From: Hypanus sabinus
Lineage: Eukaryota
Length of the DNA stretch: 64,000 nt
Direction: 5' to 3'
NCBI RefSeq assembly: GCF_030144855.1
Contig: NC_082724.1
Location: forward strand, 47,182,001 to 47,246,000
Part shown: piece after piece, positions 2,156 through 10,454 of the stretch
Numbering within the stretch: the first letter of the stretch is position 1
How the letters are laid out: each line of letters starts with the position of its first letter
Notes under the pieces: model-generated
What the model was told of the DNA's origin: nothing
The model's input: only the letters and a program-made list of their open reading frames with translations
Databases searched by the model: none
Position numbers and translations under genes: made by a program

Positions 2156-2444
2156 GAGGTAATCTTAAGATCAGGATTACAACATATTTTCTTGTCTATA
2201 GCTTAGGGCAAATATGGATGGCACCATCTGATGCTATCAATGAAATATTTCAGAGCTGATATTAATAGAGGTTTCTCAGGGAACTCCAGTTAGACAGACT
2301 ACAGTGATCATGCCAGCTCCCAGAAGATTAATTCAATTTCTCTTCTTATTCACACGATGAAGATACTTATCTTTTCATTAACCACTCTTAATTATTTCAA
2401 AATAGTCTGAAATCAAGAGACAATTTAATAAGTAAGCAAGCAAT

Positions 2445-2538
2445 AAATCAGCATACCTTTTGGGATGTGGGAGGAAACCAGAGCTCCTGAGAAAATCCAT
2501 GCTAGAACATGCACAACCTGAACAGGCAGCAGTGGATC
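2445..2538 (-). mobile_element. HE1-type V-SINE fragment (probably continues at 3543-3610, split by the PLE)
   Basis: tttgggatgtgggaggaaaccagagc is the reverse complement of the V-SINE central domain (GCTCCGGTTTCCTCCCACATCCCAAA). Confidence 0.65.
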
Positions 2539-3542
2539 GACACACACAAAATGCTGGAAGAATTCAGCAAGCCAGGCAGCATCTATGGAATGGAATAAAC
2601 TGTTGACGTTTCTGGCCATTACCCTTCATCAGGACTGGAAAGGAAGGGGGAAGAAGCTGGGGGAAGAGAAAGTGTACAGGCTGGTAGGTGATATGTGAAA
2701 CCAGATGAGGAAGAAGGTGGGTGGGTTGGGGAGGTGGGGGGTGGGGAATGAACTAGGAAGCTTAGAGGTGATGGGTGGAAAAGGTAGAGGACTGGATAAG
2801 AAGGAATCTGGTAGGAGAGGAGTGTAGACCATGGGAGAAAGGGAAGGAAGAGATGCCCCAGGGAGAGGTGATGAGCAGATGAGAAGAGAGGGAGTAAGAA
2901 GGGAGCAGAATGTGGAATGGAAAAGGAGAGAAGAGGAGGGGGAAAATGTCCAAAAGTTAGAGAAATTGATGTTCATGCTATCAGACTGGATGGAATATGA
3001 AGTGTTGCTCCTCCAACTGGAGAGTGGCCTCTTCGTGGCAGTAGAGGAGACCATGGACTGGCATGTCCAAATGGGACATAAAATTAAAATAGGTCGTTAC
3101 TGGGAAAACCTGTCCTTTGTGGTGGACAGAGTGAAGGTGCTTGATGGAGCAGTTGACAAACTATGTCAGGTCTCACTGATGTGGAGGATGCTGTACTGGG
3201 AGCACCACAACTATGGATGAGCCCCAACAGACTTGCAGGTGAAGTGTCATCTTAACTGGAAGGACAGTGTGGGGCTCTGAGTGGTGATACGGGTGGAGGT
3301 ATAGAGGCAGGTGTAGCATTTGTCCTGCTTACAGGAGTAAGAGCCCAGAGGGAGATCAGTGGGAAGGTATGAGTGACCGGTGAGTCATGTTGAGAGCAAT
3401 CCTTGTGGAAAACAGAAAGCGGGAGTAGAGAAAGAAATTTTTAGTGGTATGATCACGTGAAGATGGTGGGAGTTGTGGAGAATAATGTGCTGGATGTAGA
3501 GGCTCATGGGGTTATAGATAAGGTCAAGGGGAACTCTATTCA
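2539..3542 (-). mobile_element. Penelope-like retroelement 3' fragment, same family as 1047-2155
   Basis: Minus-strand NRVPLDLIYNPMSLYIQHIILHNSHHLH and QSDSMNINFSNF; the tail reads ccagtcCTGATGAagggtaatggccaGAAAcGTC on the minus strand (about 2605-2638). Confidence 0.85.
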
Positions 3543-3681
3543 GGCAATGCCAGATTTCAGGACTGAACCTGGCTCCCAGGAGCTGTGGGACAACAGAATT
3601 ATCCATTGTGATGGACCCTCATTCTGCTATTTGCTGTATAATACATGCAAATAATCCTTTAACGTAATCGTAGAATCACTG

Positions 3682-3847
3682 GAGCAACACACAAAATGCT
3701 GGAGGAACTCGGCAGGTCAGGTGGAATTTCAGGTTGAGCCTCATCAATTGACCACATCCACTTCCCTCAGCATAAGCTGCCTAAATTCCTTCAGTACGTC
3801 GAGTGCTGTTCCAGATTCCACCATCTGCAGTCCCTTGTGTCAACAAG
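3682..3847. mobile_element. Short decayed foldback of two PLE termini
   Basis: Minus tail caacacacaaaatgctggaggaactc followed by plus tail ccagattccaccatctgcagtc; flanks ATCACTG (3675-3681) and ATCGCTG (3848-3854). Confidence 0.55.
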
Positions 3848-4099
3848 ATCGCTGATTTGTTTTAGAAGGTTCACCATCCGCTTAGAGATTTATTATCATT
3901 CCTGAGGAACATGAGATGGCAGTGCTGCTTCATTCAGTGCAAACCAGCATACTGGCAATTCATCATCTAAGTTTATAATCTTAACAATACATTTCTAAGT
4001 TTCAAAAAGCTAATCTAATATTTCATCGTTTCCCAAATTTCATATTTGCAACAATACCCCTCCCCACCAAGATCGACAACTATCAAACTTTGTATTTTG

Positions 4100-4230: not shown

Positions 4231-5528
4231 CTTACTAAATTTGGATAATTCTGCTTTGTTAGTTTTGAATAATTCATTAAAGATGTTCTCCTCTCTGAGA
4301 CCTGTGCAATTAAGTGGAAGTGGTATCATGATGCAGCAGTGAATACACAAATGCAGGGACTCAAGTTTAAACTTAACCCTGGATTGTATCTGTGCAATAT
4401 GCACATTCTCCATTTGACAAGCAGGTTTCTATCAGCCTCTCTGATTTCCTCCCACAATCTATAGATGAATTGGCTTCTCTATATGAGCTCCTTATTTAAG
4501 TGAAGTGGGATAGAATTAGTTGCAGTTTAGAAGAGATAAGGAGAAGGGGAATATGACTGATGGCTCAATCGACCAAATCATTGCACTCTGTGTTATTAAG
4601 AAGTGACTATAACAATTTGTATTTATATAACTGTATTAACTTGGCAAAATATTCATTAGCGACAGTGAACCACAGATAGATATTAGCACAAGTAAAAGGA
4701 AGGGTTTAGGGAGTATCTTTGAGGGAGGTAGAGATTTTCAGGAAAGTTTGATCTTTAAGTGATATCCAGGTCTTAACTCGTGTACCTGCATATTCTCATG
4801 GGGTCCTATAACATCACTCCCTCGACAAGAAAAGCCTTAAATAATGGTCATTATTCAGTGTTCTTTTTGGCTGTCATATTTACTACTACTCAACAAAAAA
4901 TAATTTGCTATCACTTCTTGAGAACAATAATGGAGTTGTAGAAGTGCACACACTGATTTATTTCATTGTAACTGTTTTTGATATAATTTTGATATAATTT
5001 GTACAAACAATTTTGGCCACAATAGGAGTTACTTCTGAACAAAAATGCAATATATTTCAGGGCATGTTTAGATGAAAGAAATTGCAAACTGAATCAAAGG
5101 CAAACAGTTCTTATCATTTTCTCATACAACATTCCCTTTTGCTGAAAGAGAAGAAAGTGAAGGGAAGCTGTTTTTGGGTGCAAGTTAAGATTTTCCAGTT
5201 GAGTCTGGCCTCTAGTGAAACTATCTCTCACAGGAAGATGGAGCACAATTGCAATAAGAAGAAGAATATTTACTGCCTTCATTCTCTGTCCTGATTCCCC
5301 CTAAAGAACTCTCCTGGGGCTTAATTCTACTAATCTATGCCATGCAACATTTTTTCTCCTTTCGTTTGGCTCAATCACTCCCTTAAAGCCGTTCATTTTA
5401 AATTTTGTTAATGAATCTGATTCAATTATTGTAATTAATTTGTGACCCTTCCAGAATTTCTCTCTCTGAGAGCCTGTGATGTCAAATCTCCACTCAGTTT
5501 AATTGGTTCTTTTCCCTTCTCTCTTCAG

Positions 5529-5668: not shown

Positions 5669-7709
5669 GTAAGTCACAACCTGCTAGACTGTTAGTACCA
5701 CGTATGTCAAGTCAGCAACTAGTAAAACCAAGAGGCCACCTTATTTGACATGGGGCTGGAGAACCGTTCCTTTAATTTTCTGGCCAATGTTTCATCCCTC
5801 TATAAATCACTAACTACACTAGACTTACCTTATTGCTGGTTGCCTAAGTGTTTCATTGCAGCCTTCAGGCAGTTGTAGATATCAAATAAACTATTGGAAT
5901 AGTTGAGGCTGTTTCTAATAGCAACACATCATTTGAGACAGCGCATATACTGCTTCTTGGTTGATTAATTTACTGCTGTGAATTGCTCTTGTGCGCGGCT
6001 GATTGCTAGAATCAGCAGGAAATCAATGGGATTGTGGGGAAAAATTAAATGAATTAATGTAAAGGTTAGTTGGCACAGGCTTGGTGGGCCAAAGGGCCTG
6101 TTTCCACCTTGTATGACTCTAGGAGGGAAACTTGGGACTTCTTCATGTTTATGCATATGCTTATACAGATTTATCACATGGACATTGAAACATACAGTGA
6201 AATGAGTTGGCCACGCCCGTGTTACCCGCGCCTACATAGCATGCTGCAAATGTTCAACTAAACAACACAAGCAGCAATATCAACAGCAGAACAATAGCTA
6301 AACAAGGCCACCCACTCACATACATAGACAGTCCTTCAACCCCAGCATCGTTCGCCTCTGAGCCTCCAGGCTCCCATGGAATGGCAGACTTGCAACATCA
6401 GACCTCCAATTTCCAAAGTGGGCTCACAGATTGAGGGCTTCTGGCTTCTGGATTCGCCTTTGGCCTTCAGTATGAACCCCAGTACATGCCTATGTCAGGA
6501 CCCTGAAGTCCAGGTCTCCAATTCCAGAACAGCCAACTTGTTGACTGTGGAGTGGGGGGTGGTCACCATAGTGCTTCGCATTATTTATATTTACATATTA
6601 TTTGAGCATATTTTCCCCAATACAAATAGGAATTGATATAACTGCAAAATGATATCCCTTTGAAGTACCTATCTGATCTAAATAGCAGAGGAAATAACAG
6701 AATACAGAATAGAGAGGCAGCAGGTGAAGAGACTGACACTGACATATGTACTTCGCTCCACTTTAAGGCACCTAATCCAAGGGAGGATTGCAGAGACATT
6801 GTGCTTTGATCACATCCACAATACTTGTTTCCTGCTAGCAATCATTAATATGTTGCAAGTGAAGTAAAACAGTAAATCTCTGCTGTGTTTATGGTTTCCT
6901 TAGTGAGTATCAACACTTATTGGGCAAATGATGTTGGTAACTTTGTTTTTGTGATTTTGAATTGGAACTTAAAATCTGTGTGATGTTACAAAGTCTTGCT
7001 GCTGACTGTGTTTCATAAGCACATACAGCTGCTGACAGGATCCTCCTGGATTAAAAGTCTTTAGAATAAAGATCACATAGAAAATTAAAGTAACATCCTC
7101 AAAAAGAAAGTATAGGAACATTTGACAGTCAACTAAGCTGAGCCAGGTGACAAATATGGAAAGCAGGCAGTGCTTTTCAGATCACCCAAAATGCTCAAAA
7201 ACCGAAGAAAGTGATGAAAGTTTTCCTTTATAAAATAAATCAAGTAATATCAAGAAACTTAAATGGTGACATATTCTAAAGCACACAAAACATAGTACAG
7301 AAAGCTAAAATAATAAACACTCAATATCATTCCCTTGGAAATATTCCCTTCTTTCAAGTCCATGCAAGTCCCATCTGCTTCCTGTCTCCGACTTGAGAAG
7401 GACCTTTGGTCTTAATTTCCTCCATTAAAAATGGCCATAACCTTCTATATGCACATTGAGTTTCCTCCATGGGACTGCAGTCAATAATTCACTGACCAAC
7501 GCTTCTGGATTCATGAATGGGAAAGCAGAAGTTTCTGTCAGTTATGGACACTGATAGATGATTCTGACTCATTTTCCAACACAATTCAAACAAGGCTAAC
7601 AGATTTCTACTAAGTGCCAAAAAAGAACTTGAAAAAGTAAAGCAAATTAAAGCCTAAATAAACACCCTCGAGTTACATTGTCTGCAGCTTTCGCTAAAGT
7701 TCTTGTGCA

Positions 7710-9010
7710 AAGGTGTGTGCTGTGGGAGGGTGGAGGGTGGTTCTTTATATACTTTGATTATTGGAATTTCTTCTAAGGTAGCAGAGATTCCATGAATGAA
7801 GAATTCAACCTGAACTGGAGGGGGACTACAGAATTACAGGGATATTTGCTGAGTCTATTTGGGGTGGGGTCTTAAACTAATTTGGCATGGGAAAAGAAAC
7901 ACAAAGTACCAATGCAGCAGGTGGTGATGATAACTCAATCATAGGGGATAAATCAAACAAGCCTTGTGGGAAGAAAACAGCAGCAGTTAGGAAGCGTAGA
8001 CATATTGACAGACTTAACTGTCTTCACTTTAATGCAAGGGGCTTCACAGTAATACTACAGAGCTTAGTGTGTGGAGTAGTACATAGCTTTATGATATTTG
8101 TGGAAGCACAGAAACATGGTCACAGAAGGGCAGGACTGGTAACTCAGTGTTCCAGATTATAGAACAGAGGTTCTAAACCTGGGGTCCACAGATCACTTGG
8201 GGTCAATTAACTGGATGGGGAAAAAAATTACATCTTTATTTTCACTAACCTTTAACTGTAATTTAGCATTTTCTTCAACTATGAATGTTGGCAATAACCC
8301 ACAGTAGTATTAGCAGTATCTGTGACTTTGCCACCAATAGAAATCACAGATGTTTTCATATCATATTACAGTTGTTAGAAATATCTCAAAATACTGTATA
8401 CTGCACACTCATCACTACTTTGAAATTATGTTAGTTATTGGACGCACTGCTAGATCAACCGTGATCACAGTCTTCCTGACTGCAGACGCTCATGCAACAT
8501 AACTGGCCAACTCTTGGTCAGCCCTGCGATTGGATGGCCAATGTGACATGGATGTTGCTTTGTCAAAGACCACCCCACAGTTTAATGTTCTTATTCAAGC
8601 TGAGCAACAATAGCCTTCTCACTGATATGTATTTAAAAAATAAAATTTAATTTTAACTTATCTAGATTTTAAATATATAGTCTTGTTATTAAATGCATTA
8701 ATAAAGAAGTACATATATTACTAAACCACATTTGAAAAACTGTTTGATAAGTGTATTTCAATATAACTGGTTTCTTTTGCAATCCTATATATTTTTATAC
8801 AGTATTTAAATACATGATTCTGAGAAGGGGTCCATAGGCTTCACTGGACTGATGAAGGAGTCTAGGGGATAAAAAGAGGTATAGAAAGTTCAGAGGTGAT
8901 AGAGATTGATTTAAAGGAGAAGAGAAAATTGCCTTATTAATCAAAGAGAATGTAATGACAGTATTAAAGGGAGGGATCCTTCAATGAGTCCATAATGGTA
9001 GAACTTAGGA
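7710..9010 (+). mobile_element. Old CR1 LINE fragment (ORF1 end and ORF2 endonuclease start), interrupted by a hAT at 8165-8880
   Basis: aacctgaactggagggggact...cttaaactaatttggca (ORF1 esterase end), LNCLHFNARG (APE start), resuming after 8886 with ALLIKENV. Confidence 0.65.
8165..8880 (+). mobile_element. hAT-Charlie DNA transposon deletion derivative, Charlie4/MER80-like
   Basis: Left TIR CAGAGGTTCTAAACCTGGGGTCC preceded by TTATAGAA. Transposase C-terminus RLDGQCDMDVALSKTTPQFNVLIQAEQQ*PSH* at 8527-8625. Right subterminal ttctgagaaggggtccataggcttcac; right TIR mostly deleted and followed by TATAGAA. Confidence 0.8.
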
Positions 9011-10454
9011 TAAAATTGGGTCTTTTGAATGCATTACAACATTTTTAACTACATCCCAAAAAAATTAGTTATTTTCTTTTATAGCTATAGAAATAACATA
9101 AAATGAAACAGAATGAAAATCATTCTTTTTAGGTAGAGACAAGTCTTTATCTTTTTTACAACGTTGAATTTCAGAATTTTTCATTAAGTTCTATTACAAG
9201 CGAAATAATTGGCTTCACAACATTCAACAATTTCAATACTCCAATTTTCCTTATTGTGGTGGTAATTGGATTCTATTTTAATCTGCAAGCTGCCTTTGTG
9301 CCAATGATAGGATATATCAATGCAACAGTTATTATAGGTCTCACTTGTAAAGACCACAAAACTGTTTTCCAAAAGGAAAGCATATGTTTTGCCAAGCAAT
9401 CAACTAAGCCATCACTAGTGGTTTGAGAAGGAGGCAGTGGAGGCAGGAGTCGAAATAACACCAATAATAAAGCAGGCAATGTATCAAGTGCCTGGATTTA
9501 AAACAATAATTTATTTTGAAATATTTGGGAGAAATTCCAAGCTCTTCTGGCTTTAATAAAACAATGAAGCAGAAGTAACTGAATTTGATAGTAACATCGA
9601 AAAGTACCAACCAGGCTTATAGAAAGTGCAGTTGCCTGTGTGGGAGACTGCTCATGACAGCTGATGTGATTTATGACTTGTATTTGAATTTCTGGCCAGC
9701 ACAAGCAAAAGGAAGATTGCACTTAATGTCAGTATATAATTGCTAGTGTAGTTTCAGAAAATAAAAGAGGTTGTCAGGGAAAACGATAAACTTTTGCCAT
9801 CAGGATATACTTGGAAATTTATGGCAGTACTATTTCTGATATTTATTAAGCTAGTTTTTTTTCACAGTTTTGATCCTTGCAATTAAACAGAGAAATCCAT
9901 GAAGATGTCTATTGATTTGGGTGCAATTTTCATTCTAATGTGATGGAATTGAAGGGTTTTTTCGTAGGAAAAATTGAATCATAGCAAAAGAGCAAAGTGT
10001 GTGGCTGTTTCTTCCTATAAATTAGCTCAAATATTTCAGGGAGCAAAATATAAAACATTTTTCAGTGCCGTCCATGCAAGAAAAATAGTTTAATAATGTT
10101 CTTCAGCTAAATACTCATCTAAAAATGGTCATCATTAAAATATATAAATTATCACATTAGTTAACTACAGGTGTCATTTAATTACAACAAGAAACAAATT
10201 GCTGGAGGAGCTCAGTGGGTGTGTCCACCTGACTATATAGAACTCGATCTGTATTAATGACGTACTTCTGAACACTGCAATTGTAGCTAGAGTTTATTTT
10301 TTATCAGCCTTTATTAACTCTAGCCAATAATATAGTAAAATAGTAACAACAGAGAATTAAAAAAAAAACTGCAAGATCGATAGCATGCTGTATTTTACTT
10401 AAGCATTTGCAGCAGTCAAGTTGAAATTTAATTGTCACTCAACTATACATGAAT

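Follow-up and report, generated by a model that had tools for sequence, protein, structure and literature searches.

A dead, internally deleted Buster/Charlie-type hAT transposon in a stingray intron and its probable horizontal transfer between animal phyla

The stingray element and its insertion site

The window analysed here, a 64-kb stretch of stingray DNA, has a G+C content of 39% and a CpG observed/expected ratio of 0.19, which is vertebrate-like. An intron in this window contains a hAT element of 714 bp (8165-8878), dead and internally deleted, which is inserted in the remnant of a LINE ORF2 endonuclease. The features of the locus are listed below in window positions; L009 and L012 are metagenomic contigs carrying relatives of the element and are described in the following section.

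7887-8164, + strand: left part of the LINE ORF2 endonuclease remnant, the insertion target (three-frame translation: LNCLHFNARG, STETW, EGQDW, LSVPDYR)
8157-8164, + strand: left target site duplication of 8 bp, TTATAGAA, fitting nnnTAnnn
8165-8180, + strand: left terminal inverted repeat, CAGAGGTTCTAAACCT, aligning to the repeats of L009 (from 7990) and L012 (from 396)
8165-8526, + strand: non-coding 5' region of the parent, subterminal and untranslated, matching L009 and L012
8527-8528, + strand: internal deletion junction, with about 2.6 kb missing, which is nearly the whole transposase gene
8527-8625, + strand: last 32 codons of the hAT transposase and the stop (translation, phmmer and alignment to relatives)
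8626-8878, + strand: 3' non-coding region, its right terminal repeat truncated, with 79% identity to a consensus built from seven invertebrate-host copies
8879-8886, + strand: right target site duplication, GTATAGAA; inner right terminal repeat in an alternative parse
8887-9010, + strand: right part of the same LINE ORF2 remnant, where the frame goes on as KFRGDRD*FKGEEKIALLIKENV..., then ESIMVELR

The two flanking octamers, TTATAGAA and GTATAGAA, are identical at 7 of 8 positions, as for a hAT-type duplication of 8 bp. In silico excision of the element together with one duplicate renders the LINE endonuclease frame continuous (...EGQDW*LSVPDYRKFRGDRD*FKGEEKIALLIKENV), and this restoration of the frame across the join confirms the target duplication well beyond a chance match of 7/8. 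The duplication reads TTA-TA-GAA, with TA at positions 4-5, and thus conforms to nnnTAnnn, the target duplication consensus of the Buster family (PMC3517528). An element end at 8896 was considered and dropped, since the sequence from 8887 onward belongs to the LINE frame. The LINE remnant itself is decayed, with several frameshifts and stops, and breaks off abruptly near 9010, where it is followed by unrelated AT-rich sequence; a Pfam search with its left part (7887-8164) gave no match. No second copy of the element is present in the 64-kb window, and a word search of sequencing runs with window positions 7000-10000 gave no run containing more than 44% of the words. From the point of view of annotation, the locus is ordinary, a dead, fossil hAT lodged in an intronic LINE that is equally dead.

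The first bases of the element, from 8165, are CAGAGGTTCTAAACC, and its left terminal repeat is intact and homologous to that of the relatives, which starts with CAGGGGTTCTTAACC. Alignment to the relatives shows that the right terminal repeat is incomplete, its outer 6-14 nt, including the outer CCCCTG, being absent. The right end of the relatives reads ...GGTTAAGAACCCCTG and that of the ray copy ...GAGGTATAGAA, with 14 nt missing in the ray; in the wider context the relatives have ...AAAAAAGGTTAAGAACCCCTG and the ray has ...AAAAAGAGGTATAGAA, followed by LINE sequence. This end can be parsed in two ways. The last 14 nt of the terminal repeat may be gone with the duplication kept, or a deletion between the near-repeats TTTAGAA and TATAGAA may have removed the duplication of 8 nt along with the final 6 nt of the repeat. 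Under the second parse, 8879-8886 represents the inner right terminal repeat, joined to the flank through a microhomology deletion of 14 nt. The restored empty site is identical in either case, and under either parse excision of the ray copy is no longer possible. Immediately internal to the left terminal repeat, a short local duplication is present at 8177-8204 (ACCTGGGGTC and ACTTGGGGTC, 18 nt apart), which is absent from L009 and L012. A literature search with the terminal repeat strings gave no match.

The frame at 8527-8625 reads RLDGQCDMDVALSKTTPQFNVLIQAEQQ*PSH*; a TAG interrupts it in frame at 8611-8613, and its natural stop, TGA, lies at 8623-8625. A longer frame (8443-8625) ends ...ALSKTTPQFNVLIQAEQQ*PSH*. 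The DNA of this coding tail is 91% identical to the consensus of the relatives. A Pfam search with the 36-residue tail piece of the ray alone gave no match; the homologous C-terminal ORF of L012 matches the hAT C-terminal dimerisation domain PF05699 (E = 1.5e-5, 25.1 bits against a cutoff of 21.4). Coding status for 8490-8526 (AT*LANSWSAL, equated with ATTYLCESGFS) was ruled out by the alignment to L012, where this segment is 5' non-coding. By blastn, window positions 8405-8528 correspond to L012 1300-1423 and window positions 8527-8841 to L012 3997-4317. The junction 8527|8528 in the ray is therefore equivalent to L012 1423|3997, a loss of about 2.6 kb with which a separate alignment agrees. 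The ray copy retains non-coding sequence on both sides, about 360 bp at the 5' end and about 250 bp at the 3' end, together with the 32 C-terminal codons of the transposase.

A sequence-only reading of this DNA had described the terminal inverted repeat, the probable target site duplication and the transposase tail of a hAT. The duplication (8157-8164/8879-8886) and the tail (8527-8625) stand, the former through the LINE frame restored on its removal and the latter through the 91% DNA identity to relatives whose C-terminal ORF matches PF05699; so does the left terminal repeat, while the right one has to be described as incomplete. That reading had also taken the element for a deletion product of a related autonomous hAT, which the deletion of about 2.6 kb mapped on L012 at 8527|8528 supports. 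The extra stretch of about 225 bp that it had assigned to a region including the transposase C-terminus is to be revised: the C-terminus is there but amounts to 32 codons only, and 8457-8526 is 5' non-coding sequence of the parent.

Relatives of the element and their host

With the 36-residue piece as query, a phmmer search covering 1.84 billion proteins led to P0003, a 55-residue ORF of 79% identity (E = 6e-4). A word search with P0003 gave 15 further tail ORFs, of which one is from ENA and the others are from JGI metagenomes. The contigs of the relatives (L001 and L006-L013) come from the JGI metagenomes 3300042615, 3300042652 and 3300042655 and from the ENA assembly ERZ27277078, and close relatives were seen only in host-derived contigs of these three metagenomes and this one assembly. 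Prokaryote-genome and viral collections scanned for relatives gave nothing, and in the metagenomes a scan with P0003 as query retrieved nothing beyond one distant locus of 46% identity, in four copies. This locus (L002-L005) is a single eukaryotic one found in four JGI metagenomes, with a 163-residue ORF and a distant hAT tail, 46% identical to P0003; its CpG ratio, about 0.8, points to a further invertebrate as the host.

The L012 element is decayed and almost full-length: a terminal repeat lies at 396, ORF pieces at 2365-4080 and the right end near 4364. Upstream of the C-terminal ORF, precomputed annotation places PF27073, PF27046 and PF14291 on L009, L012 and L013. These are FAM200/ZBED5 RNase-like and FAM200-GTF2IRD2-like domains, and such a core is found in the relatives only. 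The nearest named proteins to the transposase of the relatives are ZBED8-like and FAM200C-like. Taken together, the PF05699 C-terminus and the upstream FAM200/ZBED5 and FAM200-GTF2IRD2-like domains identify the family as a Buster/Charlie-type hAT. Among the flanks of the relatives, four of six have TA at positions 4-5 of the target duplication. L009 contains a separate deletion derivative, with a different junction and a target duplication of its own (CTCTAAGC/CTCTAGGC).

Several further features of these contigs were observed. A nested insertion of about 685 bp lies within the 5' non-coding region of the L012 element (615-1299) and is absent from L009 and from the ray. In L001 (591-863), the 3' untranslated region of the hAT copy contains a tandem array with units of about 35-45 bp around CCGATCCCACGGGAACC, which is absent from all other hAT copies. 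The invertebrate host has a palindromic hairpin repeat in very high abundance (L001 1452-1678; L009 688-822, 7309-7478 and 12246-12472); its ORF has 339 protein matches, and the 120 listed among them are all unnamed JGI proteins with no taxonomy. Rfam and tRNA scans of the contigs of the relatives gave nothing.

The CpG observed/expected ratio of these contigs is 0.82 over 73 kb (range 0.66-0.96), compared with 0.19 in the window. A ratio of 0.82 indicates that the host of the relatives is not a vertebrate, and hence not human. The contigs have many repeats in common with one another, and the hAT described here is the only repeat that they have in common with the 64-kb window. Two carboxylesterase exons on L006 find their best match among solved structures in insect carboxylesterases, and the nearest Atlas clusters are described as 'commonest Arthropoda'. 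The nearest named transposase fragments are from moth (56-61% protein identity to the relatives), lobster (58-65%) and Hydra (52%). We therefore take the relatives to live in an invertebrate, probably an arthropod, a label that is drawn from the two esterase exons and the nearest-neighbour taxa.

Divergence of the ray copy and horizontal transfer

Over 8527-8886, blastn of the ray copy against the nine contigs gives 78-88% identity. At the 5' side, the identity is 81% to L009 over 8195-8478, and to L012 it is 76% over 8161-8396 and 74% over 8405-8528; E-values across these comparisons range from 1e-17 to 1e-89 and identities from 73 to 88%. The 5' non-coding region matches L009 7990-8290 at 81-88% identity as well as L012 392-614 and 1300-1423. 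Identity over 8259-8404 is 88% with L009 and 84% with L012; over 8405-8527 it is 77-78.5%. The 3' 360 bp were compared in a MAFFT alignment, in which the majority sequence was taken from the invertebrate copies.

Ray copy against the invertebrate majority sequence, 3' 360 bp: 82% (K2P 0.20)
Same comparison, coding tail only: 91%
Same comparison, 3' non-coding only: 79%
Each invertebrate copy against the majority sequence: 89-97%
Ray copy against each invertebrate copy: 78-80%
Invertebrate copies against one another: 84-95%

The ray copy is thus an outgroup to all of the invertebrate copies. Its CpG observed/expected ratio is 0.19; 5 of the 8 CpG positions of the consensus are changed in it, four of them via C>T or G>A, and its non-CpG divergence is 16.8%. 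Loss of CpG together with this divergence is indicative of a long residence of the copy in a methylated vertebrate genome. At an assumed rate of about 1e-9 substitutions per site per year, its age would come to roughly 100 million years or more, less the divergence between the two source lineages.

The ray non-coding DNA is closer to the family of the relatives than are the coding cores of other arthropods (52-65% protein identity), and the 79-88% non-coding identity links the ray to a host whose CpG ratio is 0.82. Non-coding sequences that are about 80-88% alike cannot persist by descent over the vertebrate-invertebrate split, and the presence of the same family at this level of non-coding identity in an invertebrate genome makes horizontal transfer the best reading. 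We therefore interpret 8165-8878 as an old, immobile, non-autonomous Buster/Charlie hAT whose family was horizontally transferred between animal phyla, with a probability of roughly 0.8; the ray side of this comparison consists of one copy in a single 64-kb window. The sequence-only reading had already named the element a candidate for horizontal transfer, a proposal which is now supported by other evidence, namely the 78-88% identity between ray and invertebrate copies, non-coding sequence included.

The history of the element may be pictured as follows. A deletion took about 2.6 kb out of the interior of an autonomous element of about 3.3 kb, leaving both non-coding ends and the last 32 transposase codons. 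Transposase acting in trans would then have moved the short element into the LINE ORF2 remnant, where insertion at a TA-centred site produced the 8-bp target duplication. Decay in place then removed CpGs, introduced a premature stop and deleted 14 nt including the outer right repeat, leaving the copy immobile. The family would have reached the ray lineage, or left it, via horizontal transfer between animal phyla.

Other readings and known systems

It is possible, at somewhat short of even odds, that the element belongs to the mammalian Charlie4/Charlie4a (MER80) family and that an ancient transfer links early mammals and rays. According to the sequence-only reading, non-coding blocks of the ray copy would match the MER80 consensus very closely, a resemblance that we too presume; MER80 would have a different deletion junction, joining 8456 to 8681, where the ray has its junction at 8527|8528. 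Against this, all of the relatives actually found belong to the invertebrate host. MER80 is listed as Charlie4a, a non-autonomous hAT (Kojima 2018, PMC5753468), a source used here for the equivalence of the names only. The wider proposal that the ray element, the invertebrate family and the mammalian Charlie4/MER80 are one family, whose spread among early mammals, batoids and arthropods would date back more than about 100 million years, is held more tentatively still. If it is true, an old human DNA transposon family gains a reservoir outside mammals and a semi-intact autonomous relative (L012), and a confirmed link to mammals would supply an ancient human repeat family with a date and a source.

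Buster subterminal non-coding sequence is needed in transposition (PMC12637253), and part of the non-coding conservation could therefore reflect function. Vertical inheritance from the common ancestor of vertebrates and arthropods, with the ends held near constant by transposase binding, is nevertheless very improbable. Such constraint agrees with the approximately 126-240 bp of each end that are required for Buster transposition (PMC12637253), and conservation is higher in the coding tail (91%) than in the 3' non-coding sequence (79%). However, some 600 bp of non-coding sequence, the untranslated 8405-8526 among them, show 77-88% identity throughout, and constraint on the ends does not explain the whole stretch. 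Moreover, the named arthropod relatives are just 52-65% identical even in the protein core, and no other source gave a match at such similarity in the word searches or in the metagenome, prokaryote and viral scans.

An artefact, whether invertebrate contamination of the ray assembly or ray contamination of the metagenomes, has a negligible probability: only the unexpected similarity speaks for it, and contamination is excluded by the target duplications on both sides, by the CpG contrast between a ray copy at 0.19 within a CpG-depleted LINE and metagenome copies in contigs at 0.82 with host-specific repeats, and by the outgroup position of the ray copy (78-80% to each metagenome copy, these being 84-95% identical among themselves).

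Horizontal transfer of a Buster/Charlie family thus remains the preferred reading. The Buster/Charlie clade includes TcBuster and AeBuster as well as the domesticated ZBED5, ZBED8, FAM200 and GTF2IRD2, and has in common with the ray element an 8-bp target duplication with a central TA. Further likenesses are the terminal repeat of about 16 bp beginning with CAG and a C-terminal tail ending ...KQQQPSH, and in the relatives the FAM200/ZBED5 RNase-like, FAM200-GTF2IRD2-like and hAT C-terminal dimerisation domains. Unlike the active members of this clade or the domesticated genes, the ray copy is a dead deletion derivative with 32 codons and without the outer right repeat. With Charlie4/Charlie4a (MER80), the element would have in common the order of the non-coding blocks and the type of terminal repeat.

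Horizontal transfer of hATs among animals is established. To our knowledge, almost all of the documented transfers are young and concern tetrapods, teleosts or insects. SPIN and OposCharlie1 (OC1) are hATs which were horizontally transferred between tetrapods and the bug Rhodnius prolixus (PMC3621081, PMC11614815). As in these cases, the hAT described here occurs in a vertebrate and an invertebrate (probably an arthropod), its non-coding identity is far above that expected from descent, and deletion derivatives predominate. The likeness is one of event type: the published SPIN and OC1 cases are young, with more than 95% identity, whereas about 18-20% divergence separates the ray copy from the invertebrate consensus, which suggests a much older event, and unlike in SPIN and OC1 the vertebrate host is a stingray. 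An old transfer between a cartilaginous fish and an invertebrate would extend such events both further back in time and to a wider range of hosts.
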